From Paraphysomonas bandaiensis (taxonomy: Eukaryota; Protista; Chrysophyceae): a stretch of 24,807 bases of DNA. The DNA lies in the NCBI GenBank assembly GCA_965644295.1, contig CBFFRP010000321.1, positions 1-24,807 on the forward strand. The letters are read 5' to 3'. Positions 2,299-24,807 of the stretch are shown piece by piece (position 1 is the stretch's first letter; every line of letters begins with the position of its first letter). The notes beneath the pieces were generated by a model. That model saw only the letters and a program-made list of their open reading frames with translations. It searched no databases and had not been told where the DNA came from. A program made the translations under genes and the position numbers.

Positions 2299-2308
2299 CT
2301 CGCTGTGG

Positions 2309-3022: not shown

Positions 3023-3033
3023 TCTTTATTTTA

Positions 3034-3552
3034 CTAACGAAAGAAATTATCGTATGTTTGAAATCGCTCTTTTCGAACTCTTGCTCTGTTATTTGATTGT
3101 CGCTTAGGTCCTCGTTTATAGTGTTGGTATTCTTCGTCATCGTAATCATCTGCGTCATCTGATTCCTCATCAGTTTCACTGGATTCACTTTCCGATTCTT
3201 CCACAACAATCCGTGTTTTTGGTCTTCGTTTCTTTTTCCTGACAACTATATATTGTTCATCGGGGGTTTCTTCCTCGTCCGATGGAATTAACTTTGTAGT
3301 CACCATAGGTGTTTTAACCTTTTTCTTTTTTAGTTGTTGATTTTCTTGTTGAACCAAGAGTTTTGAAGCCTCTATCATCTTTTCTTTTTTCTTTGCCTCA
3401 ATAGATGCTATTCTCTTCTCACGAACTTTTTGAAATGCTTTCATCTGTGCTTCACTTCGGGGTTTTTTAGGTTTAGTGAGAGGAGTTTGAATTTCCGGGG
3501 TATTTTCTTCGATGGGAGCTTCGATTTGTTCGTTATCGTAAGTATCGGACAT
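3034..3552 (-). CDS. Hypothetical basic/acidic viral protein
   Basis: ATG at 3552; KPKKPRSEAQMKAFQKVREKR basic helix and an acidic tract; collinear with neighbouring ORFs. Confidence 0.65.
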   Translation of the reverse strand: MSDTYDNEQIEAPIEENTPEIQTPLTKPKKPRSEAQMKAFQKVREKRIASIEAKKKEKMIEASKLLVQQENQQLKKKKVKTPMVTTKLIPSDEEETPDEQYIVVRKKKRRPKTRIVVEESESESSETDEESDDADDYDDEEYQHYKRGPKRQSNNRARVRKERFQTYDNFFR

Positions 3553-3628
3553 GTCTTTTAATAATACCAAGAAAATAATTTGGTTGGAAATTTAATAATC
3601 TAAAATTTTTATGTTGATTATAATAAAC

Positions 3629-4742: not shown

Positions 4743-7408
4743 TTGTATACCGATATATTCAGTGTGAGAAAACAACCGTTCCTGATAACACTGTCCGAGC
4801 CACTGGGGTTGACTCTTGTATCTCCGGTAGCTAGTGAGAAGACTGATGATCTAGGTCTAGCTTTTCAGGAGCAAGTATCTCTACTAAGAAGTCATGGTTT
4901 CGCACCAACTGTAGCCTATCTGGATCCGCAGCCTGGTTTCCAACCCCTCAGAGGACAGATTACAGGGGTGGAAGTGGATGTGTGTGGAGCAGGGGATCAC
5001 ATGGACAAGGTAGATCTCAAGATCCGGAGACTGAAAGAGACTATTAGATCTGTGCAGGCAGGATTACCCTGGTCACTGCCTGATAACATGGTCAGAGATC
5101 TGGTGAAGTACTCAAACAGTCGCCTAAATATCAGAAGGCCGTCTACAGGCACATCCATAGTAGCGCCACGAGTAGCGTTCACTGGGAGAAAGCCTAACTA
5201 CCGAAAGGAACTAGAGCTAGCATTTGGTGACTACGTGGAGTGCTACAACCCAAAGGTGCGAAGCAACGATGCCGAGCAAAGTCGCACTGAGCCGTGTATT
5301 GCATTGTACCCTACTGGAAATGCCAACGGTAGCTGGCTTTTCATGAATGCGAAGACAAACAAGCGAGTGAGAAGGACACACTGGGTGAAAATGAAGACAA
5401 CACAGCTCATAATTGATGCGATGAATCAGATGGCGAAGTTGGGTGATATGACTAGGAAGAGTCAGATTCCGAACCCACTCCTACAGTCGATAGAAGCAGA
5501 AGAGCAGCAGAAAGGCGAAGACATGAAGGAGAGTACGCCAGAGGACGTTAAACAGACTCCAGTTGCAGAAACAATAGTGGAAGATGTATCTACTACTGTG
5601 GTTGATGTAGAGCATAGCGGAGACCCACTAGGAGATGACGGTGATAATGAAGGTGAAGTGCCAGAACTTGTTGATGAGGAGCTGGATGACGATGTTCCAA
5701 CTATAAAGTCCGGCAGCAGCATTACAAGCAGTGACGAGACAGGCGTTGAGAACGACAGGTCGCCGGATGCGAAGTCGAAACCAGTAGAGTACAGGGCCTT
5801 TCACACGAGTGCGATGAAGGGACTGCGTGAGTATGGTCCACCGGCATATAACGCTATCATATCGGAGCTGAAACAACTTTTGCATGACAAGAAGGCTATG
5901 CGTCCAGTACACCGCAAAGACTTATCGGCAACACAGTTGAAGAGAGCTATTCGATCTCTGATGTTTCTCAAGACTAAGTATGATGGATTAGGGCGCTTCG
6001 AAAAGATAAAAGCAAGACTGGTAGCTAATGGCGCACAACAAGATAGGAAGGTGTACGTAGACACATCGTCACCAACAGCAGCGATGCAATCGATTATGAT
6101 GTGTCTGGCGATAGCTGCTAAAGAGGGACGTCACATAGGTACCATGGATATAGGAGGCGCTTACCTGAGATGTCTGGCGAAGAAGTCATAATGGAATTAG
6201 AGCCAATGTTAACGACGATATTGAAGAAAGTGGCTCCTGAAGTATCACCGTATGTTGATGAGACTGGTAAACTACTAGTGCGGCTGGACAAGGCGCTATA
6301 CGGGTGCATCCAGAGTGCGAAACTCTGGTACGACACGCTTACAGGATATTTGAGAAGTTTGGGATTCGAGCACAACGCGGTCGACCCATGTGTAATGAAC
6401 AAAGTAGCTGGCGGGCGAAAGTGTACAGTGGTGATATTAGTGGATGACATACTGGTCATGTCAAGCCATAAGGGCGACTACCTAGAGTTGCTTAAGAAAC
6501 TGAAAGAGAAGTTTGGGGATGTAAAGCACGACGATGGGAAAGATCTGTCATATCTCGGAATGCACGTTAGAGCAGAGGGAGAAAAGGTGACAGTGTCCAT
6601 GAGATCGTACATCGAGAATTTTCTACGAGAACACGGAGTGACAGGAACTGCTACATCACCTGCTACAGCTACTCTATTTAAGAACACCATGGACAAACCC
6701 ACTAGTAAGAGTGATAGAAGGAAGTTTCACAAGATGGTGGCTCAGTTGCTGTACCTGGCCAAAAGGGTTAGACCAGACATACTACTTGCAGTCGCTTACC
6801 TTAGCACGAGAGTCAAGAATCCGACGCATGCTGACATGGAGAAACTTAGCAGGGTGACCCGCTATCTGAACGCAACTAAGGGGCAGGACTTATTGCTGTG
6901 CATTGGAAAGAATCTTACCGTTACTGGATACGTCGATGCAGCGTTTGGGACTCATGACGATGGAAAGGGTCATTCGGGCCTGGTCGTAAAGGTGGGGAAT
7001 GCAACAGTACTCTGCAAGTCGTCGAAACAGCGCATTGTGACACGTGACTCGACGGAATCAGAGTTGGTAGGTCTATCAGATATGTTAATGATGATTGTGC
7101 AATGTGCAGAATTCATAAAGGAACAAGGATACAGTATTGACGCACCTCGAGTGTTGCAAGACAATACCTCGACTCTATCTCTTGTAACGAAAGGCGGAGG
7201 CAAATATCGTACAAAATACCTGCGTGTGAGGCGTGAATTCATCAAGGAAAGGGCAGATGAAGGAAGCATTCAATTGGAGTACTTACCCACAAAGATGATG
7301 CTGGCTGATGCATTGACGAAGCCCCTCCAAGGTACTCTGTACAAGTTTATGACATGTGGTATCGTGGGAAACAATACACATGCCACAGGGGTGCGTAGAG
7401 CTAAATGA
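4743..7408 (+). pseudogene. pol: Copia pol (integrase, RT, RNase H), 5'-interrupted, with a frameshift at ~6165
   Basis: YTDIF, FGDYVE, KARLVANG, DIGGAYL|, LDKALYGCIQSAKLW, ILVDDIL, SYLGM, GYVDAAF, STESELVG, LQDNTS, LADALTKPL. The expected 'NA' of GAYLNAEM is missing at the frame change (small deletion). Confidence 0.92.
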
Positions 7409-7751
7409 TGATTCGGTATAGAAGTCTTCGAGTGATGGAAATGAAAGTCAACGTGCACATTCGTTTTTGTCACAGTGATTATGTTTTCAGTTATTGTACA
7501 TGTGTGACTCTGTAGGATACGAGTGAGAGTGTACAGTAGAACATGATCAGCTGTAGTATTATTGTGTTGTGGGGAGACACCATAATTTCCTATCACTAAC
7601 GATTTCTGTAGTATTTGCAAAGAGACTTGTCTTTTGCCTACCTGTAGTGTAGTTTGAACGGAGGACAACGGGCGAACTGGATCCGTGAGTGTTTGATTGA
7701 TCTGTAGTATCAGTGCTGTATTTTCGATCCAAGTACGTATTTCTCTACGCA
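7392..7751 (+). repeat. 3' LTR of the Copia element (~360 bp)
   Basis: Starts TGCGTAGAG right after the purine tract and ends CTCTACGCA (perfect 9-bp inverted termini). Ends could be 2 nt further inside (see findings). Confidence 0.75.
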
Positions 7752-9522
7752 CCCTCAGAGGAGTTTTTCTGACCCTTGTCCAATGTCGTCAAAATGTTTT
7801 TTTTTGGTGGGACCATCAAAGTTCAGAAAAGTGGCTGACTGGACCGCTTTGTCAAAAAACTCCTTCATGGGATACGGCGGTATGGATATGCGATATCTAG
7901 TGGCGGAAAAGAAAACTGTAGGCAGTTTTTTTGAGTCATTTGCCCATTCCAGACACCGTATTCCACACAGTTTCATAGTTTAGGGTCCCCTCCATATGTC
8001 AATCATATGCTCCAACATTGAGACATACCACATAAACACACTGGGTTACCAATAGAACATGCTATTCTGGAGGTGTGGAGTCCAACTTCCGCAAGTTTTG
8101 GTGGAAATTTGATTGTAAGATTGCAATTGTTATCCTGCATCAAAATTCACAGTTTATGGAGAGCTCCTGAACTCACTGTGAGGTATATAGCAGAGACCAG
8201 TTGCTGATAACAATGTTGTGATTGCAAAGATGAGATCATGAGTTCTTATTCTGGATTCATTGATAAACGGTCAAGAAATATGCACAGGTCACTGTAGGAG
8301 ACCTCTCCCTAATTGCGCCTTCCTTGTTGCACTTAATGATCCTACATGTCCCCAAATTCAAAGAATCGTATTATTCTTAATATTTGAGTGATATGAAATC
8401 ATGATATTGACATTCATCTCTTATTTTGTTGGAATTATGTTCATTCATTGACTGAGCTCTATATGCGGTATTGACACCATGGTCCCAAACCCCTTCCAAC
8501 CACGGGTGTAGTAGTCCTATTTTGCAGTGAATTTAACCTCAATGACTGTTTATGATACTGTTATAATGGTTTGATTCATGTAAGTATGCTTTGATGAAAT
8601 ATTAAGGCCATATTGGATGAGTTGCTACTTTGCAAAGCAATATAGTACGCACTTATGTCACTTGTGACGAAATGTCGTATGATATGATATCAACCCTACC
8701 CAATCAAATTGGATGTTTATAGTGAGTTATTATAAATAATTTAACTTCATTTTCTTGTTCAGATTAATATGTCTTTCACTGTTGGTCTGGAAATACGATT
8801 ATATGTAGATAAATTATGCGAGTTTATAGAGATATTTATGCGAGTTGTGACCGTATAAAACTGACAGACAACATTTATAGCGATATGTAGAATGCGTAAC
8901 CCCTTTACTATTCATCCTTAGATAGTGTGCCTTCATTATCTGTGCAACAAGCTTCTGCAATTTACGATTCCAATGACTTCTACTTCTACTACACTGTTAC
9001 ATATCATCTCTGATAACCTCACCCACAACCTATATATATTGTTCTTATCCTGACCGTTTAGTTGATATTTGTGGTTTAAAAATAGCCTTCTTGTTCTAAC
9101 CATTATACTCTATACGACACCGACTTAACTAGTCAATTGTATCTCATGATTAATGTTGTTCACATGTGACGTATTTCCATAATAGCTGGTATTTAAAATT
9201 GAAAGTGACACTCTTGTGACGTTATTGTATCTGCTAGCGTTATTTGATAGTACTCCCTTATTTAGTAGGAATCTATTATTTAACCTAGTCAAATTGGTTG
9301 AATTACCTTCTCACACCAAAATTGGTAAAAAAACCTAGTCATTTAATAATTCGTATTTTCAGTTTACAATGACTAGGTGGACAAAAGTACCTAGTCAAAA
9401 ATAAAAAATTTCACTCAAACATGGGAGCATACTCAAGCCATCAATTACTGAAAATACAACCATTGTACACATGCAATACAACACATTTAATCTTCGCAAT
9501 CAAACGAGAATTGGGCAGTTTC
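7750..9522 (+). repeat. Repeat R copy 1 (~1.77 kb)
   Basis: Aligns end to end with 16738-18526, from CACCCTCAGAGG to GAATTGGGCAGTTTC. Confidence 0.95.
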
Positions 9523-9829: not shown

Positions 9830-10168
9830 TGAGTTTGACACCCCATCCAGCAATAATAGAAAGCGATCAACAACCTCAGAGTTGACTATAGCTCTTAATT
9901 TTTACTAATTTATTGATTGTTAAGAAAGTACTAGGATTCAATCTAATATAAGGTAGAAGTCGAGGTAATACCAAAACCTGGTAAAGCGATTTCACCAGGT
10001 TTCATATCTAAGTATTGAGTTATTATTTTACTGTAATTTGTATCTGAGAGGTTAAAGATAAAGAAAAAGTTGCAATTATAGTTGTTATTAGCAATATTTA
10101 TTGCGTGGAAGTATAAACTAGTACCCCAACCCTAACCCTAGTTCAAACCAATTGCATAGTACAGCTCA
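9830..10168 (+). repeat. Putative 3' LTR of the second Copia remnant
   Basis: Follows the purine tract GGTGGAAGGAAC; TGAG...CTCA inverted termini; internal TATAA (~9947); downstream of the RNase H remnant. Confidence 0.5.
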
Positions 10169-10173
10169 AGTAG

Positions 10174-13100
10174 TTACTTGGGCGCTCTTTTGTACGTAAC
10201 AAGGTAAGCAGGATAGCTTTGATGCAGTTCGTAAACAATAAGCCCTTGAATAGACCCATCAATCGGACCACGCACAGACTGGTAACCCGCTGAAGGGGTT
10301 TTTATGCTGCTATCTTTGGTATCCTTCTGCTCAATACAACCCTGGGCGACATATGCCAGAAAAATCTGTCTTTCGTCTGAGTTCTGGAATTCATACGAGT
10401 AGCGATTTGCGTAACCAGTATCGTCAGTAAAGTACGATCCTCTACCATAATAATTTTTGTCACCAGACCAACGAATATCAAAACCATATGTGTTTGTCCT
10501 CGAACCACTATTCCAGACAGTTTCCGGATGTGTATTACGTGTTCCATGCTTCAGAAGAATCTCATTCGCATTGCCTCCGTTTTTACGAGCAACCTCTTTG
10601 CGCTTCGTGTCGTAAAGACGGTAGAGCTCTACGTTTTGCACACGTTCAATGCGTACTATGTCTGCCTTAAAATTGTCATTTCCAAAGCATTTAGCAGCCT
10701 CGATGTACTCGCTGCTAATTGGCTCTAGCTCTTTGAGTGAAGGGTCAGGGAAGCAATCGTCATCAGATAACTCATACCCCCAGGTATCAGGTAGAGAAAT
10801 GGCACGGCTGTCATTGTAGACTTTATTCCTCTCATATTCAAGCACTTTTGTCTGCGCCCGGAGCACTACAACTTCCCCTAAACCTTCAATAACAACATTC
10901 CAGTCGGCATCATTGCTGGAGCTGATCACGACATTCATTTCTCTGCTTAGTTCCTGGAGTTCATGAAGTGCGGTTTCGAATTGAATATTGGAAGTTCGTA
11001 GAAGACGTAATTCAACAGTGTTGGAAGTTTTGTTTTCCAAAATGAAACTATCGAGAGCAATCATGGTTTTCTTTATCGCATCAGAGGTACCTATTTACAC
11101 AAAATATATTTACATCCAATCACGACAATAAATGACAAAATAATTTACCGAATATTGCCACGCCGTTCTTTCTTTGTAAGGAGTTTAGAGTCTGTATCCC
11201 ATCTCGACCTTTTACAAAAGCACCAGTTCTTAAGTTCGTAGGTATAACCCTCTCAACGATGTCAGATCTAACGCGTATTTGCTCTTTACACCGCTCATTG
11301 TACATCGGAATATTCTTAGGATCGATTACAGGTCTGCGGAAAATCGGACGTACAGAAAGGTCATTCAAGGGTGGAATCGTTGTTTGTGTTTTTAGTGAGA
11401 AGTCAATTTTGTATTGTTTATTATTTCTTGCTCCGTAGGCATCACCAACCAGAGTAACCGACGAGTCTCCAGCAAGAAATGCTCGCTCCATTTGCATAAC
11501 TTGATCATAATCATAAGGAACAACAACATGCTCAACCAAAGATTCGTCACACACGGTACGAACCGCCCCATCTGGCTGTTCCGAAATCTCATGAGTCCAC
11601 ACTTTCCGGAACCACTGATACTCAGGCACTGAAGGTGGTGGTGGAGGAGGGAATTGTGTAGGGATAGACACCGACGCACCAATGGTGTGATCCTGCAATG
11701 CCTTTAGTGCTGATACGAACGCAGATACCCTGGACTCAATGTTGTCAAAAAGAACTATTTTTTTCAGAGATTTCTGGGCGTCATCAGCCGCTGTTTGGTC
11801 ATGAATGAACTCTCCGATTGCAAGTACGATTTCTGTTGCAGCATCTTCCACCGGCCACTTGAATAAACCCATACCAACACCTGGAATCGCTACGGCCTCC
11901 GCGCCTTTTAACTGAGCTTCACACAAGGCATTCTTCACAGCATTATACAACAAATGGCGTTCGCCTATCCTCACAGAATCGTCAGAAGAAGAAGACCATA
12001 CCGGAGCCACCGTATGTATAATACTCTTGAATCCGTGATCATGCAAACGATACGATTCCGTCGCTGTCGCTCCACCAGCAGGAATATGACTTTTGGAATT
12101 ACACTCCCTAACAAGTTCGGGGCCAGCAGCATCTGATATTGCCTTCGCAATACCACCGTCATGCTGCAATTGTGAGTTGGCGGAGTTGACAATTGTGTCA
12201 CATCCATAAGATGCAGTCTCAATAAAATCACAATGAACTACGTAAACAGATATTGGACCCATCTCGCACTGGCATTTCAACTGCGGATCGCCATAGGTTG
12301 AAATTAAGTCTTCACTGACAAAATCCACCACAGTATCATTTTCGTCGCCTATATGCGTCGCATTTTGCATCAACCAGTTCACCTGATAATCGTGAAAGCA
12401 GTCTACCACTGATAATTCGAGATCAGCTACAATTTTTCGTAATTTCGCCTTCGTTGCCTCAATAGCTGCTGGTATCATTTTTTGAGGACCACGAAGCGTA
12501 AGAATTGTGGAGTTGTTGGAATTTGATTCACTGTGAGCCTGGGGTATCGTTAGAGTCAACGATTTAAAAGTCTCAGACACAAAGTTCTGTAAATGTGCTA
12601 AAGTACATCCCTCACCATCTCGACGAAGATATCTGGCAATTCTATCGCTATGCGGGAATTCCGAACAGTCGATATCGGCAGACTCGGGCTGCTGTCCAGT
12701 CATTTCTTGTTCAATGTAAGCAATTGCTCCCAAAACCGATTCCCTGGCACCATGTAAAATAATATTCTTGGTATCCTTGTCATATTTATAAGACAATTGA
12801 TCAAATTTATTGAGTGCTTTATTGAATCCAGTCGGATTTTCACCCTTTACAGATATTTCACTCCTTGTAAAGCTGTCAATAATATTTCGGGCTGTTTTGA
12901 CAAGGAGCTGCCATTGGTCCTGGCGCTCATGCAGTGCCACAATACAAACCTCTCTCCGTCCTGGGTAGAATTTCGCCAGAGGCATCCGGACTGTTCTAGA
13001 CTACATACGATACAATTAACGACGAAATGAGGATTACATTACTACTCAAACTTACATTAGAAACAGACGTTTTGTCAGTGTTGGATCCAGTATCCAGCGA

Positions 13101-16100
13101 ATACGTACGGTCTTGGTCAGAATCATATGCTCTAAACCAGCTTTCGAAAATTGATTTCAGGTTGTTTTTAAGTGCTTGATAGAGGTCATCGCTCTGTTTT
13201 TCCTTCGGAATTGCAATGGTTTTTTCCAATATTTTCCGACGCCGTTCTCTTAAACGTGTCTCCGCAAGCTCAACCATCTTTTCTAGACCACGTACAGCTA
13301 CGACGCGCTTTTGTTGACGCTGAGATACTTCGAGCTGTAATCCAGGTGCAATATCATTGATCTCACTAATCAAAAAGCACCAGACTGCGTCCATAAAAAA
13401 GTAATTTTCGACAGCAGGGCGGTAGGAGGAAGTGTCTGGAGGACCACCCGGGGCATCGAATACATCTAACTCCCGTTCGCAATGACGAAGTTCGTTAATA
13501 CGATGCATGACTTTTTCCGCCCCCTCCGCATTGCTAGGAGGATAAATCAGTTGAATAGACTCAACTTCACGCGCTTCAGGACTAGGCAGTGATTCACAAA
13601 ATGACACACCATTGGATGACTGTGAATTGAGGAGCCTGTTTCTCCTATCCTCGTCAAGTGCATCTCGAGATAGCACGATATAAGCATGTAGCACTGGTTC
13701 CTTTTGTATGTTAATATTAACAATATGAGTAACGGGGTTGATGCCTAGTTGAACTAGGTGTGAACGCGCAAATTCCTCTATATCATTAGCACTCGCATTT
13801 GGGTGTCGTTGAGGAGACCGATTCGCCGGTACATTCGGTCCTGCTGACCAATGTTTAGGAAGAAGCATGAAAATGGCGTCAGCGCCACACATGTTCTCCT
13901 GCTTACGCCTAGACACATTGCAGTACACTTGATATTGCTTTTTTATTGTTCGCAATTCAGTGTCACCCAAAAGAACTGAGCGTGGCACCGGCACTTTGTC
14001 TCGTAAAATCTGTAGACCTCTTAGAAACTCCTCTACACAACATTTTCCTTTTTTCAGCAGATCATCTGCATCAGTAATTGATTGCTGTGAAGGTTCAACG
14101 TGATAAACCGATAGTCGCAAATACGGTCCCTGAGAATCAGTACACAGCTCCAATACGACATCGGGTGACACCTTAAGCAACATGTCATCAACAATTGGCT
14201 TTGAGAGGTACTTGAGGTGGTTGTAGTGTAGCCAGCTAATAGGCCACATGCACGACCTGGTAGTCTTGTCACTGTTACCTGTGCATTCAAAGTATCCATA
14301 TCCCACGGTGCTATCGTCGGGACACTGGACCCATATCATACTTCCACCAGTGGCAGAACAGAGTGCAGGAGCCCCCCCACTTTCTCTAAATTGGCTTTTG
14401 ACCACATTTTTTTCAGCGCACCGTGGAAAATTCTTATAGAATTCACCTACATGCATCACAATTAGCAGCCAGACTTCAAAGTAAATACGAATAGGAATAC
14501 GACATTAACAAGCGTAATAATAACGTACCCAATCGATTGGCGGGAACCTTTCCCCCCTCTAAGCGTACCCAAAACTCCAGTAGAAAGTGCAAAGCTACAG
14601 AAACTAATCCTCCCTGATTATTAGCCTGGTAGCAAAGAGCTCCATTACTTCTACCACAAAAACTGTCCAAACCTCCATATTTAGTATTAATCGCCCCGAT
14701 TTCTTGTTTATCTTTAAGTAGCTCTTTCATGTAAGCGGGATAGAAACGGCTGGCCTGTCCCCTTACATACATGAAATCGGCAAGAGCAAAAACTAGAGAG
14801 GCATACTCCTTATCATTCTGTGGGTTTCCAAATATTTCCACAGTAGTGTTATTAACTCCAGACGCCATAGGTTTACTGGCACCAAGGATTTCTTGCCACA
14901 CACCTAGAGAGTAGCGAGGACTCACAATGGATTTGAAAACATCAGAACATTCCGCAGGGTCATAAATTAAAATCACAAGTATACCCATCCGTTTCAAATC
15001 GTCTACAACAGAGGAGTAGTCACCATCACTGGCAATGAGGACAGCTGCAGTTTTTTGTTTCGCATCGTCATTCATTTTTTGGTAATCAGCTACAAATGCT
15101 CTCATGTTACGCTCAATGCGCTTATCAACCTCTCCTTTCTTTATACCCGGCACATCGATAAGTACTGCCCCAACAGTGTCCATATCTCGAACGAAAGATT
15201 TCGATGGGTGAAAAACATTATTGCTGTCGCGCCTGATGCAAAAATCCCACTTCCATGACAGATCTCGGTCAAAATCCATAACATTCACTGCTTCCATACT
15301 TCCGAGAAAAGCGCACATGATCTTCTCTAACGTGTATTTAACTAGGACTCTGGCCTTCAGACCTAATCGCCCTTCACACCTACAATTCTCCACATCGTGA
15401 AATATGTGCACAAAGTATGGGGTATTATCCGTATTTGGCGTAGCGATCGCTTGACGCTGCGCTTGAATAGCCTTGATCTTGGATAGCGCATGCTCATAAG
15501 TTGCAAACATGTCACGGACATTGCGAGCTCGTACAGATGATGATTTCCCCTCGTTATCAAACTTATCAAGCTGATCGCGATATTCAGCGAGCCGCTCTTT
15601 CAAACTTTCAACGCTGCTCTCACCCAACTCATCCAATATACGGTCAATATCTCCATCCGATGCGCGTGTAACAACGCCCGCTTGACGCTGCACTTGGATA
15701 GCCTCGATCTTGGATAGCGCATGCTCATAAGTTGCAAACATGTCACGGGCACTGCGAGCTCGTACAGATGATGATTTCCCCTCGTTATCAAACTTATCAA
15801 GCTGATCGCGATATTCAGCGAGCCGCTCTTTCAAACTTTCAACGCTGCTCTCACCCAACTCATCCAATATACGGTCAATATCTCCATCCGATGCGCGTGT
15901 AACAACGCCCGCTTGACGCTGCACTTGGATAGCCTCGATCTTGGATAGCGCATGCTCATAAGTTGCAAACATGTCACGGGCACTGCGAGCTCGTACAGAT
16001 GATGATTTCCCCTCGTTATCAAACTTATCAAGCTGATCGCGATATTCAGCGAGCCGCTCTTTCAAACTTTCAACGCTGCTCTCACCCAACTCATCCAATA

Positions 16101-16551
16101 TACGGTCAATATCTCCATCCGATGCGCGTGTAACAACGCCCGCTTGACGCTGCACTTGGATAGCCTCGATCTTGGATAGCGCATGCTCATAAGTTGCAAA
16201 CATGTCACGGGCACTGCGAGCTCGTACAGATGATGATTTCCCCTCGTTATCAAACTTATTAAGCTGATCGCGATATTCAGCGAGCCGCTCTTGTAAGCTT
16301 TCGACGCTGCTCTCACCCAAGTCGTCCAATATACAGTCAATAACTCCTTCAGAGGGCGTAGATAGAGAATCGCAAGCATCTTTGGCCTTCAGGCATTCGT
16401 CCAAACTCTCTTTGAAGTTGTTAGCTCTCTGTGATGAGCCCAGCCCGCTATCCTCGAGATCTTGCACTTGTCTTCGCAAGGTTTCTATTTCTCTCTCCAG
16501 TTCATCCAGTGAGTCCACACCGATACGATCCAGAATAGCTTGAATCGTCAT
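10174..16551 (-). CDS. ~2060-aa multidomain protein: 77-aa repeats - NYN nuclease - LOTUS-like x2 - RRM/KH-like region - macrodomain - WWE - PARP catalytic (PARP14-like with NYN). Exons 16551-14529, 14446-13056, 13000-11149, 11090-10174
   Basis: Four collinear ORFs join in frame via GT-AG introns 14528-14447 (82 bp), 13055-13001 (55 bp) and 11148-11091 (58 bp); exon total 6183 nt. NYN: IFHDVEN, KKGEVD, VLIASDGDYSSVVDDLKRMG. Macro: IVNSANSQLQHDGGIAKAI, AIPGVGMGLF. WWE: YQWF..., PYDYDQVMQMERAF, YKIDF. PARP: IERVQN, LLKHGT, YGRGSYF, HQSYPAYLVTY. Confidence 0.9.
15449..16342 (-). repeat. Coding tandem repeat, 231-bp (77-aa) unit, ~4 near-identical copies plus a diverged fifth at the N-terminus
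   Basis: CGGTCAATA at 15641, 15872 and 16103, with variant CAGTCAATA at 16334. The N-terminal IQAILDRIGVDSLDEL... resembles IDRILDELGESSVESL. Confidence 0.97.
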
Positions 16552-16737
16552 CGTGCTGCTCTCTTGTGATTAGTAGTGAATATGAATACTGTAGAGTGAA
16601 TCAATGCTCTGCTGGTGGCGTGTGCTGCTGTATATATGTATATGCCGTATATCTGATATGGATATATGGGTATGTGTGGTCCGCTTCCAGGATATTTCCC
16701 GGCACTGGTCAGTGTCAGTACCAAATAAGACCCAGCC

Positions 16738-18526
16738 CACCCTCAGAGGAGTTTTTCTGACCCTTGTCCAATGTCGTCAAAATGTTTTTTTTTGGTGGGA
16801 CCATCAAAGTTCAGAAAAGTGGCTGACTGGACCGCTTTGTCAAAAAACTCCTTCATGGGATACGGCGGTATGGATATGCGATATCTAGTGGCGGAAAAGA
16901 AAACTGTAGGCAGTTTTTTTGAGTCATTTGCCCATTCCAGACACCGTATTCCACACAGTTTCATAGTTTAGGGTCCCCTCCATATGTCAATCATATGCTC
17001 CAACATTGAGACATACCACATAAACACACTGGGTTACCAATAGAACATGCTATTCTGGAGGTGTGGAGTCCAACTTCCGCAAGTTTTGGTGGAAATTTGA
17101 TTGTAAGATTGCAATTGTTATCCTGCATCAAAATTCACAGTTTATGGAGAGCTCCTGAACTCACTGTGAGGTATATAGCAGAGACCAGTTGCTGATAACA
17201 ATGTTGTGATTGCAAAGATGAGATCATGAGTTCTTATTCTGGATTCATTGATAAACGGTCAAGAAATATGCACAGGTCACTGTAGGAGACCTCTCCCTAA
17301 TTGCGCCTTCCTTGTTGCACTTAATGATCCTACATGTCCCCAAATTCAAAGAATCGTATTATTCTTAATATTTGAGTGATATGAAATCATGATATTGACG
17401 TTCATCTCTTATTTTGTTGGAATTATGTTCATTCATTGACTGAGCTCTATATGCGGTATTGACACCCATGGTCCCAAACCCCTTCCAACCACGGGTGTAG
17501 TAGTCCTATTTTGCAGTGAATTTAACCTCAATGACTGTTTATGATACTGTTATAATGGTTTGATTCATGTAAGTATGCTTTGATGAAATATTAAGGCCAT
17601 ATTGGATGAGTTGCTACTTTGCAAAGCAATACAGTTAGCACTTATGTCACTTGTAACGAAATGTCGTATGATATGATATCAACCCTACCCAATCAAATTG
17701 GATGTTTATAGTGAGTTATTATAAATAATTTAACTTCATTTTCTTGTTCAGATTAATATGTCTTTCACTGTTGGACTGGAAATACGATTATATGTAGATA
17801 AATTTTGCGAGTTTATAGAGATATTTATGCGAGTTGTGACCGTATAAAACTGACAGACAACATTTATAGCGACATGTAGAATACGTAACCCCTTTATTAT
17901 TCATCCTTAGATAGTGTGCCTTCATTATATGTGCAACAAGCTTCTGTAATTTACGATTCCAATGACTTCTACTACTGCTACACTGTTACATATCATCTCT
18001 GATAACCTCACCCACAACCTATATATATTGTTGTTATCCTGACCGTTTAGTTGATATTTGTGGTTTAAACACAACCTTCTTGTTCTAATCATCACACTCT
18101 ATACGACACCGACTTAACTAGTCAATTGTATCTCATGATTAATGTTGTTCACATGTTACGTATTTTCCATAATAGCTGGTATTTATAATTGAAAGTGACA
18201 CTCTTGTGACGTTATTGTATCTGCTAGCGTTATTTAATAGTACTCACTTATTTAGTAGGAATCTATTATAGAACCTAGTCTAATTGGTTGAATTACCTTA
18301 TCACACCAAAATTGGTGTAAAAAACCTAGTCATTTAATAATTCGTATTTTCAGTTTACAATGACTAGGTTGACTAGGTGTTTTAGGGTATTCACCTAGTC
18401 AAAAATAAAAAATTTCACTCAAACATGGGAGCATACTCAAGCCATCAATTACTGAAAATACAACCATTGTACACATGCAATACATCACATTTAATCTTGG
18501 CAATCAAACGAGAATTGGGCAGTTTC
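16738..18526 (+). repeat. Repeat R copy 2 (~1.79 kb)
   Basis: Direct copy of 7750-9522, offset 8988 bp at the left end. Confidence 0.95.
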
Positions 18527-18761: not shown

Positions 18762-21454
18762 CAATTGACTTGTTAAGTCGGTGTCGTATAGAGTATGATG
18801 ATTAGAACAAGAAGGTTGTGTTTAAACCACAAATATCAACTAAACGGTCAGGATAACAACAATATATATAGGTTGTGGGTGAGGTTATCAGTGAGACACC
18901 AAGGTCTCTGCTTCAGTCTCTTCCAATCCAAAAGCCAAGCCTATATCTCTAATCTGTTCTTCACTAGCATTGGCAATGGAAGGGTCTAACCCTCCAAGCA
19001 TAAGCCTGAGGGTTCTTCTTACTGACTCAAATTTAGTAGACTCTTGTGCGCTATCAAGAGTCTCCTCCTCCATAATAATAACAATATAATCAAATCACAA
19101 TGAACAAATATATGTCTACAACTACAATGCTATCTACCAGCAATTTCAAGAGTAAGGAAATTGCATCTTATTATCAATAATATAAATATGTCTACCTACG
19201 ATTCCGTGATCAATGGAATGAACATCATCGTATCGGCAGTCAGCATCATAGTTTTCGGAAATGAATTGAAGCAAAATTACTCTCTATTCCTGATGTACAA
19301 CTACAGCGGAAATACAGATAATTATTGTCTCAATAGTAGAGGCATCTTTGAACAAAAATATACAAAGGATGCCGATACGATTCATATTCAATACCAAACA
19401 CATCAGTCAACACAGTTGATCATAATAACTCACCACAACTGTATAAGGGAAGATACATTCAGTATTCTCATTGAAGTTGAAGCCTGATATTCGTACTCCT
19501 CAGTACAATCAATCCCCAATAAGCACTGAAGGAAATACGTAATGTATAACTGTATTACTGGATAATCTGGCAATACACATCTATCAGCGTCCCGGAATTC
19601 TCCAGTAAACTTCTCCAGCCTTAAAGTCAATATATATATATACAATAAGAACATATATATATATCATCCATCATTAGTATCATCATTATGTCTCATTATT
19701 GATAATCATGTCTTTCTTTGTCTTTTGAATGATTATGTACATATCAATGATAAGCATGAATTGTCATAGTCATAACATATCATATATCTTAGTGTGAGTT
19801 ATGGCAATAATAATAATATTCAATCTATGTTTGCACAGATAGTATGTACAAACTTAAGCATATACAATAGAGAGCTTGTAGAATAGAATAACCTGATAAC
19901 TGGTTATTACATCAGAGTTGATATGTAACAGTGTAGCAGTAGTAGAAGTCATTGGAATCGTAAATTACAGAAGCTTGTTGCACATATAATGAAGGCATAC
20001 TATCTAAGGATGAATAATAAAGGGGTTACGTATTCTACATGTCGCTATAAATGTTGTCTGTCAGTTTTATACGGTCACAACTCGCATAAATATCTCTATA
20101 AACTCGCATAATTTATCTACATATAATCGTATTTCCAGACCAACAGTGAAAGACATATTAATCTGAACAAGAAAATGAAGTTAAATTATTTATAATAACT
20201 CACTATAAACATCCAATTTGATTGGGTAGGGTTGATATCATATCATACGACATTTCGTTACAAGTGACATAAGTGCTAACTGTATTGCTTTGCAAAGTAG
20301 CAACTCATCCAATATGGCCTTAATATTTCATCAAAGCATACTTACATGAATCAAACCATTATAACAGTATCATAAACAGTCATTGAGGTTAAATTCACTG
20401 CAAAATAGGACTACTACACCCGTGGTTGGAAGGGGTTTGGGACCATGGGTGTCAATACCGCATATAGAGCTCAGTCAATGAATGAACATAATTCCAACAA
20501 AATAAGAGATGAACGTCAATATCATGATTTCATATCACTCAAATATTAAGAATAATACGATTCTTTGAATTTGGGGACATGTAGGATCATTAAGTGCAAC
20601 AAGGAAGGCGCAATTAGGGAGAGGTCTCCTACAGTGACCTGTGCATATTTCTTGACCGTTTATCAATGAATCCAGAATAAGAACTCATGATCTCATCTTT
20701 GCAATCACAACATTGTTATCAGCAACTGGTCTCTGCTATATACCTCACAGTGAGTTCAGGAGCTCTCCATAAACTGTGAATTTTGATGCAGGATAACAAT
20801 TGCAATCTTACAATCAAATTTCCACCATCACCATGCATAGCGTCTATAGTATGCTCTTGAATGGTCCTAACTCCTGCTCATCTCCTTATCCAGAGCACCA
20901 ACATGAAAATGCAGCTCACAGAGGTATTGGGCTGTGTACATCCATAGTTCTGCACTTAACTTGAGACATTTATGTTCACTTTAATGCTACCTAAGTCTCT
21001 CTCCATTGCCCTTATTGCCTCTACGTCATAGAACAACAGGTGCAGTCGGCTGGCTTCACATGTATTGCAAGTAGAGATACTGGGTAACGTGTTTTGAGTG
21101 TCGTGATATTAATAACTGCCTAGAGTAGCCGCATGTATGCACTTCAGTGTGAATGGCTTGTTGTAATTCCATGACTCGTGGCTAGATCCTTGCACTTCCT
21201 TCGTAAATAATTATCTTGTACTGTTTGCTATCCTTCTTCTGTTGTTGACTCTCTTCTTGTTGTGGGTAACTCTATTTCACTACTACAACTTACTACTATA
21301 TAAACCCCCAGGGTTACATAGGGTCCCCTCCATATGTCAATCATATGCTCCAACATTGAGACATACCACATAAACTATGAAACTGTGTGGAATACGGTGC
21401 CCGGAATGGGCAAATGGCTCAAAAAAACTGCCTACAGTTTTTTCCGCCTCTAGA
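18762..21454 (-). repeat. Repeat R copy 3, inverted and rearranged (pieces 18762-18891, 19912-20827, 21321-21370, 21371-21454)
   Basis: Reverse complement of R. Interrupted by the 18892-19911 insertion and carries ~490 bp (20828-21318) absent from copies 1 and 2. Confidence 0.9.
18892..19911. mobile_element. ~1020-bp insertion, probable solo LTR
   Basis: Splits R copy 3 exactly; TG...CA termini; flanking duplication TCAG (18888-18891 and 19912-19915); the empty site is visible in R copies 1 and 2 (CTGATAACC). Confidence 0.75.
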
Positions 21455-21725
21455 CTTCTAGACTTCGCTCGTTTTTGTGTATGCGGTATGACGTATGGTA
21501 TCGTAGTACAGCAGTAGTACCAGTATGGTATGGTATGGTGTGGTGTGTGCCATGGAGTATCAGGCCAATCCGATGACAGATGACTGACGTGCGGATGGAT
21601 GTGTCGACCAATAGTTGAACTGATAGTTGCTGTTATTCGCACTTCACACTTCACACTTCCTTCTGTTTATTCTGCAGGCACTTTGTATATATGTCACTGT
21701 ATTATCATGCGTGTCCGTCTGTCCA

Positions 21726-22670
21726 ATGAGCGCTGCGATATTCAACTCCTACTCCGTCACCGGAGTGTCTGGTGACTCCACAGCCCATGCGACATGCATC
21801 CTGACGAGACCAGCGGCTGTCCTCCCGATCATATCGATAGTGTTGTTCGTTGCATTTAACGTCATATTTTCAGTTCAAACTGTTCCGAGATCACACCACA
21901 GTCCCTTCTGTGTCCCTGAAGACAACAGATATGAATTCCAAGTCAAGCCCGCTTTAAGAGTGCGTGGGTCTGTGTTTCTTCCTCTGTACGCGTCACACAC
22001 ACCCAGCACCATACAAGACAGCATTAAGGTTGCGTTGATATCAATTCACGGCTATGGCAGACACGGAGGTGAGTGTTCCGTATCTTCATGTCGTGTGTTT
22101 ACTCTCCCTGCAGGCGACACATTCTGTCAGGTGTTTTCTGCTCTCGAGAAGAGATCAGATGTGATGATTCTGGTGCCTCTCTTTCATTCGACTTCGATAT
22201 CTGGGCTGGTTTGGAATAGCAGTGACAGTCGCTCCTCGTCAGCGTTTTGGCCTACATCGAACTGGATGAAAGGTGAGAGTTTAGGAAGGACAACTGCCAT
22301 GTCTAATCCTCTTTGTATAGGTGGTAACGCCCACACTAAATTTACAACTCATGGACTATCATCTTTTGCTGCGATTGATATGTTAATCTCTCAGCTGCAG
22401 AACACTACTCTGTTTCCATCACTTAGGTTGGTGGTTGTAGCTGGTTTTTCAGCCGGTGGACAATTTGTCAACAGGTACAGCTGGGCAACTAGTCGAGGAA
22501 TTTCCAGCAATCATTCTATTGCCCCAGTCATGCAATTCTTATTTATACTTCAATAGTGTTCGCCCGCACAAAAACTGTTCACTTCCTTACAATGGTGTCC
22601 CATCATGCTCTCGATTCACGTTACCGTACCGCAGAATTAGAGCTCGTTGTCCGAAGTACGACCGGTGGCC
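21726..22670 (+). pseudogene. Alpha/beta-hydrolase (esterase-like) host gene, frameshifted and truncated by an LTR insertion
   Basis: N-terminal hydrophobic segment, ISIHGYGR and nucleophile elbow VVAGFSAGGQFVNRY. Introns 22069-22113 and 22273-22320. Frame change ~22530 before SYLYF; coding sequence breaks off at CPKYDRWP|TGTCAC. Confidence 0.75.
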
Positions 22671-24807
22671 TGTCACGCATACCTGTAGTTACTGTTATAC
22701 GTGGAGTTATACTGTGTTATACTGCGGTACTCAAGGCAGCATGCTGTTGTACTTTCATTTTCAGTTTATTTAGTATACATTGCGGTTACTGTATTCTTGA
22801 AGGGATATAAGTCCCGTATAACTACAAGTATGATACTGTAAACTGTAGATGATTCACAGCAAGATAGAGTGTTGTATGTTTTCACTTCTTTTCTTTACAC
22901 GTTTTAACGTAATTTAATTCATTCTATACTCGCGGTTTGCTTGTGTTAGGAGGCAGTTTCACCGGTTTGGTGTTCTGGACAGTGTATTCTCGGTTTGGGA
23001 AGCACTTTAAATTAATAAAACGTTGTAAACACGGTCTTTCTCATCAGAAAGATTACAGTATTAATACTTTAGTCGGATAGAAAGAAACATTGCTTATTTA
23101 TATTATTGTCGACTATGAGTTCGGAAGAAGAGGTTCCAAACATTATGGAGTTCCTTCAGCAGCGGTTTGCTGAACAAAATGAACAGTTTGCTGAGCAAAA
23201 GCAGCAGTATGCTGAACAACAAGAGCAGCTGAACAAGCGCTTTGAATCTATCGATCTTCATTTCGAAATGTTCGAACAAAGATTGCAGCAGTTGGAGTCT
23301 CGACGTTCCTCAAGACAAGCCACTCCAGCTAATTCGGAAGTAGATTTTGGAGGGGGTATATCCCAGATTGATGAAGAGGCAACGAATCAAATTGAAGAAG
23401 TTCAACAGCAAGAAGAACAAGCTGGAGGACCAGTACATGAACAGCAATACATAGACCCAGATCTACTTCAGACCAGAATCGAGGACGCAGTCCAACAGGC
23501 CGTGCTCAACGCAACGCAGGTATTGAGAGAGGAAGAGCAGCCTAGGAGGAGGAATGTTAGGAGACAGACTATTCAAGAAGCGCTAAGGCAGGCCGACGAA
23601 GACAGGACTAGTCAGGTCGTATTGACTCAACAGGATAATTCATACTTGAAGATCCAATTGACGGAAATTACTTTAGACGGCTTCATGACGTTTATGGAGA
23701 AGATTGCTGAGTATGAAAAACGGAATTATAATAGAGCGGTGCCTTCAGTGTACAGTTTGCTGAAAGATCGAGCAAGGGACATGGTTCGTCATACCCTGCG
23801 ACGCATGAATCCAACAGAATTCCCTACATACTTGGAGTGTACTGATGCTAGGATCACACATATCATTGAGGCAGTCAAACGTTTATTTAAACCTTTGGAT
23901 GTAATGGCATTCAACAAAATATTGTACAAATCTTGCAAAGCATACAAGGTTAATATGGAGAGACTGGAGGATTTCAGGAAAGCTGATGAAGATATATGTA
24001 TTCTCGAAACTAAGTTTATTCAGAGATACGACTTCTTGGTGGATGCAGCAAAAGTAAATCACTTGACTTTGAGTATACCTCTAACTACCACCAAACGAGG
24101 TGGGTCACTGGAAGTCTGGATGAGTTTGATACCACCTTGTATGAGAGATACCAGTAAGAGATTATTGAGAACAGAGAATTTCAACTCAGTGGAATCATTC
24201 TTCGAGGAGTTTTTCGAACATCTAAGAGTAACAAGGGAGCTTTCTGAGAAGTATCAACAATTCAAGGGCAGGTTTAATTTTCAAACAAAGCCTCAATTGA
24301 ATGCTGCAATATTGGCCATGATGGAGGAAGACGATTCGGATGAGAATGAGAAACAGACTAAGGAAAGTAACAATGATGCAAAGGATGATGACCTTAAGAG
24401 TGTGAATGAGGAAGTGATGGCTGCAGAAGTTTACAAGAAGAGTCCATGCTTTAAGGAAATGAATGTAGAGGGTGGGTGCAAGGACAAGAGTTGCAAATTT
24501 TCTCATGATAAGGAAATTCTTAAGGAGACACTGCGAGCTATGAATGCCAAGTTTGGAATTAAGGAAATGCCGACTAGGACTTCGCCTTGGCCTCAACAAA
24601 GGACTCAGAAAGAGAGTGTTCCTTGGTACCAGAGGAAACTAGGAAACGAGAAAGGGGATGTGCGAATGCTTGTGCGAGAACAAGAGGACCAGGGAGACAC
24701 AGATCCCATTGATGATCTTTGATCGGGTTCTACTTATCATGCTGCCCAGTTGTATAAGATGTCTACCAGCAAATACTGGAGAGCAGCACACAGAGAAGGG
24801 ATTATAA
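22671..24807 (+). mobile_element. LTR retrotransposon 5' part (probably Ty3/Gypsy); 5' LTR ~22671-23057
   Basis: TGTCACG starts exactly where the hydrolase frame breaks; AATAAA ~23014; candidate ...GATTACA end at 23057; long intronless Gag-like ORF follows. Pol domains lie outside the window, so the superfamily is inferred. Confidence 0.65.
23115..24722 (+). CDS. gag: Gag-like protein with N-terminal coiled coil and C-terminal CCCH zinc finger
   Basis: ATG at 23115; Q/E-rich coil; helical core; CFKEMNVEGGCKDKSCKFSH; position just after a putative LTR. Confidence 0.65.
   Translation: MSSEEEVPNIMEFLQQRFAEQNEQFAEQKQQYAEQQEQLNKRFESIDLHFEMFEQRLQQLESRRSSRQATPANSEVDFGGGISQIDEEATNQIEEVQQQEEQAGGPVHEQQYIDPDLLQTRIEDAVQQAVLNATQVLREEEQPRRRNVRRQTIQEALRQADEDRTSQVVLTQQDNSYLKIQLTEITLDGFMTFMEKIAEYEKRNYNRAVPSVYSLLKDRARDMVRHTLRRMNPTEFPTYLECTDARITHIIEAVKRLFKPLDVMAFNKILYKSCKAYKVNMERLEDFRKADEDICILETKFIQRYDFLVDAAKVNHLTLSIPLTTTKRGGSLEVWMSLIPPCMRDTSKRLLRTENFNSVESFFEEFFEHLRVTRELSEKYQQFKGRFNFQTKPQLNAAILAMMEEDDSDENEKQTKESNNDAKDDDLKSVNEEVMAAEVYKKSPCFKEMNVEGGCKDKSCKFSHDKEILKETLRAMNAKFGIKEMPTRTSPWPQQRTQKESVPWYQRKLGNEKGDVRMLVREQEDQGDTDPIDDL

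Follow-up and report, generated by a model that had tools for sequence, protein, structure and literature searches.

The window, by which we mean the whole 24,807-nt stretch of Paraphysomonas bandaiensis DNA that was analysed, holds an intact gene predicted to encode a protein of 2,060 residues, with a layout of 77-residue helical repeats, an NYN domain, a winged-helix-like domain, an array of KH-like modules, and macro, WWE and mono-ADP-ribosyltransferase (ART) domains. Joined in this one chain are a MARF1-like ribonuclease module and a PARP14-like module, a fusion that an earlier note on this DNA had proposed and on which profile, Foldseek and PDB matches agree. On balance, we favour the view that this is a single nuclear-type eukaryotic gene whose product would be a self-contained protein that binds, cuts and marks RNA, with RNA surveillance as its likeliest role.

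Exons, introns and reading frame

The coding region occupies positions 10174–16551 of the minus strand, on which all features of the gene lie, and runs from an ATG at 16551 to a TAA stop at 10176–10174. Before splicing it appears as four open reading frames (14476–16551, 12996–14459, 11120–12985 and 10174–11064). The earlier note had joined these through three GT-AG introns into one frame of about 2,060 residues, a model borne out by the frame arithmetic, by alignments at the first junction and by an intron of the closest relative.

Exon 1 (14529–16551; 674 codons plus one nucleotide) carries the N-terminal helical repeats, the NYN domain and the domain that follows it. Separated from it by intron 1 (14447–14528; 82 nt, GTACGT..TAG, phase 1) is exon 2 (13056–14446; two nucleotides plus 463 codons), and after intron 2 (13001–13055; 55 nt, GTAAGT..TAG, phase 0), which is predicted from splice signals and frame, comes exon 3 (11149–13000; 617 codons plus one nucleotide) with a KH-like region and the macro and WWE domains. 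Intron 3 (11091–11148; 58 nt, GTAAAT..TAG, phase 1) leads into exon 4 (10174–11090; two nucleotides, 304 codons and the stop), which comprises a linker and the PARP-type ART domain. A single frame is kept throughout (674 + 1 + 463 + 617 + 1 + 304 = 2,060 residues), with the codons split by introns 1 and 3 both being GGT (Gly). The lengths of the introns are all one more than a multiple of three, and the introns are AT-rich (22–35% GC, compared with 44% for the gene).

None of the four exons contains an in-frame stop. At the composition of the gene, reading 2,060 codons without a stop has a probability of about 10^-55, and 200 shuffles gave no open stretch longer than 175 residues as against the 296–691 observed, which together exclude a chance origin of the open frame. 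At junction 1 the reading frames of P0001, P0005 and P0003 are uninterrupted and leave room for exactly one residue, that of the split Gly codon; around intron 2 the relatives are collinear, with the junction not fixed to the residue. Intron 3 has a counterpart in L002, the closest relative, where a 150-nt GT-AG intron lies at the same place and in the same phase and splits the same Gly codon. From the sequence and the support of these relatives, the four open stretches form one intact spliced gene. As motifs only, a candidate poly(A) signal AATAAA (10097–10102) lies about 70 nt past the stop and a TATA-like hexamer (16631–16636) about 80 nt upstream of the ATG.

Domains of the encoded protein

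Homology searches and structure prediction were run exon by exon, on the separate exon products. At the N terminus is an in-frame tandem repeat (15448–16347) of 231 nt, or 77 residues, present in 3.9 copies that are 97% identical and predicted to be helical or coiled-coil-like; relatives carry the same helical module with fewer copies.

Following the repeats is a LabA/MARF1-type, PIN-like NYN nuclease domain (14878–15417; exon-1 residues 379–558), close to where an NYN had earlier been placed (about 14900–15411). In the window this domain scores 18.1–21.0 bits, below the Pfam gathering threshold of PF01936 (24.2), which is passed by the collinear relatives P0002 (24.7 bits), P0003 (27.2), P0005 (26.2), P0041 (30.9) and P0072 (24.4). 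Searched alone against PDB sequences, the region returned only noise (a topoisomerase, E 0.27), so that a family profile was needed; with a profile of 40 sequences, the only significant PDB matches were structures of the MARF1 NYN domain, 5yaa (3.4e-11) and 6fdl (3.3e-10). The AlphaFold (AF2) model of the domain (pLDDT 85) has a PIN-like fold, and its top five Foldseek matches are MARF1 NYN chains from the same two entries (target TM 0.73–0.82), followed by the LabA-like 2qip.

Near-invariant among the NYN columns of the family are Asp, Lys, Asp, Asp-x-Asp and Trp. Of the MARF1 active-site aspartates, four in number, three (Asp358, Asp427 and Asp452) align with Asp in the window protein, each at least 90% conserved in the 40 sequences, and the position of Asp426 is Val. 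Two residues past the Asp452 equivalent is an extra conserved Asp, forming the Asp-x-Asp motif, and this second Asp may compensate for the Val. Taken with the relatives and the predicted structure, the assignment of the exon-1 domain as a MARF1/LabA-type NYN, with a probable acidic active-site cluster, is confirmed.

Behind the NYN domain is a helical domain with a β-hairpin (14530–14829), winged-helix-like and with a LOTUS-like order of elements, which is kept in seven relatives and present twice in P0011. It resembles LOTUS domains only in how its secondary-structure elements are ordered and in its place behind the NYN domain; OST-HTH (PF12872) had no match in the window exons even at E ≤ 10, and comparison of the domain with the LOTUS region of P0072 was negative by phmmer, HMM and hhalign.

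Repeated small α/β modules make up the model of exon 2. Two stretches are predicted to form β-α-α-β-β-α units, the order of type I KH domains: the first at 13749–14012 (exon-2 residues 145–232) and the second at 13233–13484 (residues 321–404), the latter collinear with a weak KH_PARP14_6 match in P0005. Farther along, in exon 3, is a weak match to the third KH domain of PARP14 (12704–12823; KH_PARP14_3, 21 bits, cut-off 28), which P0001 repeats at the collinear place; weak KH_PARP14 matches at collinear places are found in P0001, P0005 and P0041. Exon 2 matched no Pfam family and no PDB sequence, and a PDB profile search with full-length rows of the family alignment re-found the macro and PARP domains and was uninformative on exon 2. 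Several KH proteins appear in the weak Foldseek list for the exon-2 model; as this model has a pLDDT of 70.6 and nothing was matched at E ≤ 1e-3, the likeness to KH domains is a lead only. No RRM family was found by Pfam in any exon. The KH-like array, the N-terminal 77-residue helical repeat and the winged-helix-like domain behind the NYN are all features beyond the earlier account.

Towards the C terminus are the three domains of the ADP-ribosylation module, whose motifs the earlier note had recognized; the macro and PARP domains exceed Pfam thresholds, making their identities certain at the level of sequence, and the WWE domain is established through relatives. The macro domain (11834–12190; Pfam 90.5 bits) has macrodomain 1 (MD1) of PARP14 as its best PDB match (1.3e-25), with MacroD-type hydrolases next. 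Columns of the ADP-ribose site, an Asn and a Gly-Gly pair, are invariant across the family. In the second macro loop, the second Gly in the alignment with PARP14 MD1 is Lys in the window protein, and with this replacement the domain may be a hydrolase or a binder.

Between the macro and ART domains is a segment (11336–11620) that scores 18.5 bits as a WWE domain in the window alone, where the cut-off is 21.1. It is 45% identical (26 of 58 residues) to the significant WWE domain of P0008 (35.7 bits) and also aligns with that of P0041, and these alignments confirm the assignment.

Closing the chain is the PARP-type ART domain (10183–10764; Pfam 55.3 bits), whose best matches among solved structures are PARP12, PARP14 and PARP15 (1e-13 to 1e-11). 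The His and Tyr of the catalytic triad are kept. At the third triad place, no long family member has a Glu before the strand, and the residue reads as a small one (Gly/Ala) or as Ile according to where the gap is set, an ambiguity owing to which activity is not assured. The sequence supports assignment to clade 3 (PARP12/14/15-like), of the mono-ART type without the poly-ART Glu. A PARP14-like writer, reader and eraser had been proposed earlier; the ART and macro domains are indeed present, but the protein has a single macro domain, of the MD1 (eraser) type, and not the set of three.

An environmental family and its known counterparts

The architecture of NYN, macro, WWE and PARP domains recurs in at least seven environmental proteins that have diverged past 50% identity. 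Belonging to the family are P0001 with a downstream exon, P0005, P0008, P0019, P0041 and P0072, and the partial P0050 (Choanoeca perplexa) and P0026. The members are collinear with the window protein over all four exons, with the domains in the same order, and have in common with it the N-terminal helical module and the post-NYN domain; identity to the window protein is 19–51% by region, and that of L002 36–51%. The same domains are encoded in single uninterrupted reading frames in P0019 (2,024 residues, on an 18-kb contig), P0008 (1,941 residues) and P0005 (1,797 residues). The window gene differs from the family in two additional introns and in the expansion of its 77-residue repeat. P0072, the sole relative added by a search with residues 1250–1941 of P0008, has its NYN domain directly before significant OST-HTH/LOTUS domains, together with WWE, macro and PARP domains; SH3, LOTUS and a second WWE are its extras.

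For the NYN subtype, 52 representatives were found among 1.84 billion, with a patchy distribution, and the search of representatives found no protein more than 36% identical in the NYN region. Exact look-ups of the window reading-frame products returned no record, and a homologue search with the six-member family alignment returned the first query only. Genomes of the family range from 37% to 70% GC, one relative adjoins an ordinary citrate synthase gene, and the JGI labels of two members name only a macro domain. The one source named by three cluster look-ups was Choanoeca perplexa, from EukProt. Judged from these sequences, the family is small and unnamed and occurs almost only in environmental eukaryote data, from diverse uncultured eukaryotes. 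No published description of the architecture was found in the searchable literature, in keeping with the suggestion that it was undescribed; it is not unique to this gene, being that of a conserved family.

With human PARP14 the window protein shares the C-terminal module of macro, WWE and ART domains, including the MD1-type (hydrolase-type) macro domain; its upstream array of small α/β modules gives weak PARP14-KH matches. PARP14 has three macro domains where the window protein has one, the window protein has no RRM match, and its N-terminal NYN domain, winged-helix-like domain and helical repeats are absent from PARP14; owing to the low sequence identity, we do not claim orthology. With MARF1 (limkain-b1) it shares the LabA-like NYN subtype, three of the four active-site aspartates and a helical domain after the NYN, a place taken in P0072 by true OST-HTH/LOTUS domains. 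MARF1 differs in having RRMs and LOTUS domains, matches to which are absent from the window protein, and in lacking an ADP-ribosylation module.

A third comparison is with ZAP (PARP13) and its cofactor KHNYN, the nuclease of which belongs to another PIN-like subgroup; the ART domain of ZAP is inactive. KHNYN is a KH-plus-NYN endoribonuclease that degrades the bound RNA, and in its coupling to an RNA-binding PARP-family protein the logic is similar (PMC11997328). In vertebrates this pairing takes two proteins, in the window gene one chain, and the window protein has no CCCH zinc finger.

Proposed role and competing explanations

In the bind, cut and mark mechanism that we favour, the KH-like and winged-helix modules would hold single-stranded RNA, and self-association could be the task of the N-terminal helical repeats. 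Cleavage of this RNA would fall to the NYN domain, whose Asp cluster would coordinate a metal; the ART domain would mono-ADP-ribosylate nearby proteins, the protein itself or phosphorylated RNA ends; and the macro domain would read or remove the ADP-ribose mark, which the WWE domain would also read. The NYN domain of MARF1 has endoribonuclease activity and restrains the expression of retrotransposons (PMC6294520, PMC6217404), and by analogy with MARF1, PARP14 and the ZAP–KHNYN pair, surveillance of foreign or retroelement transcripts is the likeliest role; by the same analogy an antiviral or anti-transposon function may be proposed.

The same protein might instead be a housekeeping post-transcriptional regulator, a MARF1-like factor of mRNA decay or RNA granules that is tuned by ADP-ribosylation and is no defence effector, which we hold to be possible if rather unlikely. 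MARF1 cooperates with the decapping machinery and breaks down target mRNAs of the cell (PMC6294520, PMC7279887). PARP14 is found in association with helicases of P-bodies, and the conservation of one architecture over genomes of such different GC content and the metabolic neighbour of one relative would suit a housekeeping gene as well. The rarity and patchiness of the family, its fast divergence, visible even in the closest relative, and the recent expansion of the N-terminal repeat fit genes in conflict better than core machinery, none of these points being decisive.

Improbable, in our estimate, is a partly inactive scaffold in which the NYN, ART or macro domain is without catalysis and serves as binder or reader only, like the dead ART of ZAP. 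Consistent with such a scaffold are the Val at one MARF1 active-site Asp position, the unusual third position of the ART triad, where a small residue adjoins the strand, and the Lys for Gly in the second macro loop. Yet Asp, Lys, Asp and Asp-x-Asp in the NYN, His and Tyr in the ART, and Asn and Gly-Gly in the macro domain are invariant or nearly so among members less than 50% identical, the pattern expected of residues kept for catalysis or ligand binding, and this argues against a scaffold.

The gene is bracketed by two non-coding direct repeats of 1.78 kb, 97.1% identical and both on the plus strand, a new observation here: copy A (7750–9522), a neighbour on the 3′ side and apparently no part of the gene, and copy B (16738–18526), which begins 186 nt before the ATG. 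The repeat recurs, in part and inverted, at 19911–20827. We considered the repeats as long terminal repeats (LTRs) and rejected this, since their ends are CACCC..GTTTC and not TG..CA and their flanks share no bases; no PBS-like or purine-rich tract was found next to them. The right-hand reading frames of the window matched no Pfam family and no PDB sequence, and Rfam found nothing in the window. One of these frames, of 538 residues, has a 98% identical copy in ENA assembly ERZ17293498, where the next reading frame is a gypsy-type pol, and is most likely, by this copy, the first ORF (gag) of a gypsy-type LTR retrotransposon. An endogenous virus had been reported beside the gene, which this assignment does not bear out; the accompanying one, of an intact gene among transposons, holds, the window being full of retrotransposon remains. 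This transposon-rich setting says nothing on the function of the gene.

That the gene is mobile-element cargo or viral in origin, carried between the two direct repeats, is very unlikely. The bracketing repeats, the third copy nearby and the retrotransposon remains would fit such an origin, as would the giant viruses of protists that encode stand-alone NYN/LabA-like proteins matching the NYN model. However, neither TG..CA ends nor a target-site duplication, primer-binding site or polypurine tract accompanies the repeats, and the gene has three spliceosomal introns, one common to a relative in a different context; repeats of this kind are absent from the relatives' contigs, on one of which a metabolic gene is the neighbour. 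Hardly credible is a row of two to four separate genes (NYN, unknown, macro/WWE and PARP), as which prokaryote-style ORF calling splits the region and as which the PARP part of L002 is called, the latter owing to its conserved phase-1 intron, since the gaps are only 55–82 nt with consensus GT..AG ends, one frame is restored, and relatives read through junctions 1 and 2 without a break, P0005, P0008 and P0019 through all of them.

A bolder form of the RNA-surveillance role that we favour, and one to which we give little credence as yet, is that the family represents a self-contained 'cut-and-cap' defence enzyme of microbial eukaryotes. PARP14 ADP-ribosylates phosphorylated single-stranded RNA ends in vitro, and its MD1 reverses the mark (PMC10499325). 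Cleavage of target RNA by the NYN domain would leave phosphorylated ends; the ART domain would ADP-ribosylate these ends or proteins riding on the RNA, blocking repair, translation or reverse transcription, and the MD1-like macro domain would reset the mark. If so, the nuclease-plus-PARP logic, which in vertebrates is divided between ZAP and KHNYN, and RNA-end ADP-ribosylation, so far seen mainly in vitro, would have in this family an ancient natural fusion that hints at their joint use.

Few hints in nature that two activities share a substrate are stronger than a gene fusion. Conserved across very different genomes, the fusion of a MARF1-type endonuclease to a PARP14-type writer and eraser argues that cleavage and mono-ADP-ribosylation act together. 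The analysis provides a first domain map for an unnamed environmental family and indicates that a nuclease can take the place of RRMs in PARP14-like proteins, and it bears on what antiviral PARPs do to RNA and on whether RNA-end ADP-ribosylation is physiological.

Gene structure and splice junctions

Four long open reading frames run one behind another along the minus strand (14476–16551, 12996–14459, 11120–12985 and 10174–11064). Separating their coding parts are three introns, located by sequence reading and a splice-signal listing: intron 1 (minus strand, 14528–14447, 82 nt, GTACGT..TAG), intron 2 (13055–13001, 55 nt, GTAAGT..TAG) and intron 3 (11148–11091, 58 nt, GTAAAT..TAG). Once spliced, the exons form one frame of 674 codons and a split GGT, 463 codons, 617 codons and a split GGT, and 304 codons followed by TAA, amounting to 2060 residues with no internal stop codon in any of the four exons. 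With consensus intron ends, a preserved frame and no stops, the single frame of ~2060 residues that the earlier note had read from four ORFs and three GT-AG introns is borne out. All three intron lengths equal 1 modulo 3, GC content is 22–35% in the introns versus 44% across the gene, and codon position 1 has the highest GC in all four exons alike. The probability of 2060 codons without a stop at the gene's composition is ~10^-55, and the longest open stretch in shuffled sequence is at most 175 residues. Directly upstream of the ATG is an in-frame stop, and a TATA-like motif and AATAAA flank the coding region. The gene is real and intact. Past the stop codon and before AATAAA lies a short telomere-like run, two copies of TTAGGG and then TTGGGG (~10120–10140, minus strand).

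All searches of the spliced model were made with each exon separately, not with the joined protein. A HMMER scan of the NYN region over 1.84 billion representative proteins yields 52 relatives (top identity 36%), with which the exons are fully collinear in exon-by-exon BLASTP. At junction 1, the exon 1 match to the environmental relative P0001 ends at residue 543 and the exon 2 match begins at 545; for P0005 the corresponding pair of BLASTP positions is 473/475 and for P0003 477/479, and the single residue left between the two matches is the split Gly codon. These three relatives are unbroken ORFs across junctions 1 and 2. Junction 2 is placed by splice signals, frame and collinearity, its position being approximate at the residue level. 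Bearing on junction 3 is the closest relative, on contigs L002 and L003 from two ENA assemblies, in which a short gap separates a 1679-aa ORF from a 317-aa PARP ORF downstream of it. The L002 intron (150 nt, GTAAGC..CAG) is identical to intron 3 of the window in position, phase and split Gly codon, and exon 4 shares 51.5% identity with the downstream L002 exon from residue 3 on. The same domains are found in single ORFs in P0019 (2024 aa, on an 18-kb contig), P0008 (1941 aa) and P0005 (1797 aa).

Domains of the encoded protein

At the N terminus is an in-frame tandem repeat within exon 1 (15448–16347, minus strand), with a unit of 231 nt (77 aa) present in 3.9 copies at 97% identity. Three copies are 98–100% identical and the fourth is more diverged, although the assembly may misjudge the copy number; the near-identity of the copies suggests recent expansion of a putative 77-aa helical unit. 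Its Pfam matches are only of an unspecific coiled-coil type, and the module is also present, with fewer copies, in relatives.

Following the repeats is the NYN domain, which in the window alone scores 21.0 bits against a threshold of 24.2. In an alignment of 40 sequences of this region, Asp, Lys, Asp, Asp-x-Asp and Trp are near-invariant, and the resulting profile matches, across the whole PDB, only MARF1 NYN crystal structures (5yaa, 3.4e-11; 6fdl, 3.3e-10). The AlphaFold model (pLDDT 85) has as its top five Foldseek matches MARF1 NYN chains (target-normalised TM 0.73–0.82), followed by the LabA-like protein 2qip. The active-site patch of human MARF1 comprises Asp358, Asp426, Asp427 and Asp452 (PMC6294520). 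Conserved Asp residues of the window occupy positions 358, 427 and 452 in the profile alignment, whereas position 426 is Val and an extra conserved Asp lies two residues past the equivalent of 452.

Next after the NYN domain is a region of ~100 residues modelled as helices and a β-hairpin, common to seven relatives and doubled in P0011. It resembles LOTUS in where it lies and in how its elements are ordered; no sequence method linked the window's domain to OST-HTH, the LOTUS domains of P0072 included. The ENA relative P0072 (2419 aa) has, in this order, SH3, NYN, two significant OST-HTH/LOTUS, two WWE, macro and PARP domains, and provides the clearest natural bridge from a MARF1-like NYN–LOTUS module to a macro–PARP module. 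Exon 2 has no sequence match in Pfam or the PDB; its model (pLDDT 70.6) consists of repeated small α/β modules, two of them in type I KH order. No Foldseek match was obtained at E≤1e-3; among the weak hits are several KH proteins, and the window, P0001, P0005 and P0041 each show weak PARP14-KH Pfam matches at collinear positions. The KH-like modules, post-NYN domain and N-terminal repeats are additions to the architecture first proposed.

Judged from its sequence, the macro domain is unambiguous (Pfam, 90.5 bits), with PARP14 macrodomain 1 as its best solved relative (1.3e-25), followed by MacroD-type hydrolases. WWE scores 18.5 bits in the window alone (cut-off 21.1); it aligns with the WWE domain of P0041 and, at 45% identity, with the one in P0008, which is significant. 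The PARP catalytic domain is clear (Pfam, 55.3 bits), its best solved relatives being PARP12, PARP14 and PARP15 (1e-13 to 1e-11), with tankyrases lower. Retained in every long member of the family alignment are the His and Tyr of the NAD+ site; no member has Glu in the stretch of the third triad residue, where the strand-adjacent residue is Gly or Ala and the exact third residue is ambiguous. From what is established for the PARP classes, this ADP-ribosyltransferase (ART) domain, with His and Tyr kept and no Glu, is predicted to carry out mono- rather than poly-ADP-ribosylation. Pfam, the NYN profile, Foldseek and alignments with relatives uphold the reading of NYN, macro, WWE and PARP in one chain.

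Family and genomic surroundings

The NYN type combined with macro and/or PARP domains has at least seven representatives diverged beyond 50% identity: P0001 taken together with the exon that follows it, P0005, P0008, P0019, P0041 and P0072, with P0050 and P0026 partial. Nearly all come from environmental assemblies (ENA, JGI and Logan), with one Choanoeca perplexa transcript (EukProt); GC content of their contigs ranges from 37% to 70%, and two members carry a JGI label of macro domain only. On its 18-kb contig (68% GC), P0019 is an intronless ORF adjoining a citrate synthase gene; the nine other called genes there have no Pfam match. The earlier note knew of no description of the architecture, and full-text literature searches gave none of NYN + macro + WWE + PARP, nor does it figure in a PARP distribution survey, a PARP domain re-annotation, an OST-HTH paper or a 2026 PARP14 review; entries for it may already exist at database level, as in InterPro. 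The architecture is no one-off. The gene is a member of a conserved unnamed family, a PARP14-like variant rather than a unique invention.

The gene lies between two non-coding direct repeats of 1.78 kb in the same orientation (97.1% identity), copy A at 7750–9522 and copy B at 16738–18526, the latter starting 186 nt upstream of the ATG. Another 1.9 kb along, 917 nt of the repeat are present in inverted orientation as a partial copy (19911–20827, 99.6–100% identity), and shorter inverted segments lie at 18762–18891 and 21319–21454. As the repeats have no LTR hallmarks or ends and no target-site duplication, an identity as LTRs is rejected; the repeats may represent a transposon fragment, a segmental duplication or an assembly effect.

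To the left of the gene are an ORF with integrase core and chromodomain (477–1493, minus strand), representing the C-terminal part of a chromovirus-like pol of gypsy type, ORFs without a family match on the same strand (1948–3570) and a copia-type reverse-transcriptase region of two overlapping ORFs (4743–7408, plus strand), its frame broken at least once, ending ~340 nt before copy A. To the right is a 538-aa ORF (23106–24722), probably what had been taken for a neighbouring endogenous virus. It has no Pfam family or PDB sequence match; a 98% identical copy, in a cluster of 25 sequences, occurs at locus L007 in ENA assembly ERZ17293498. Because that copy precedes a pol ORF of gypsy type that carries RT, RNase H and integrase zinc domains, the 538-aa ORF is most likely gag-like, the opening ORF of a gypsy-type LTR retrotransposon, with the pol expected past the window end. 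ORFs of 309 and 108 aa (21627–22556 and 19161–19487), assigned to the interval from the partial inverted copy to the 538-aa ORF, have no family match. Stand-alone NYN proteins similar to the NYN model occur in giant viruses of protists; a viral link of the gene is conceivable but unsupported.

Proposed activity and role

The domain set is shown, together with conservation of its predicted ligand-binding and catalytic residues. RNA would be bound by the KH-like and winged-helix modules and cleaved by the NYN domain in a metal-dependent manner; the ART would carry out mono-ADP-ribosylation, and the macrodomain 1-like macro domain and WWE would read or remove the mark. Cleavage by PIN-like nucleases leaves phosphorylated ends. 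In vitro, human PARP14 ADP-ribosylates single-stranded RNA that is phosphorylated at the 5' or the 3' end, and its macrodomain 1 reverses the reaction (PMC10499325). The NYN–ART fusion, taken with this RNA-end chemistry and phosphorylated PIN-type ends, suggests that cleavage and marking act on one and the same RNA. A housekeeping role in RNA decay is a serious rival to one in defence. MARF1 acts in retrotransposon control (PMC6294520, PMC6217404) and, by analogy with MARF1, PARP14 and ZAP–KHNYN, the protein may serve in defence.
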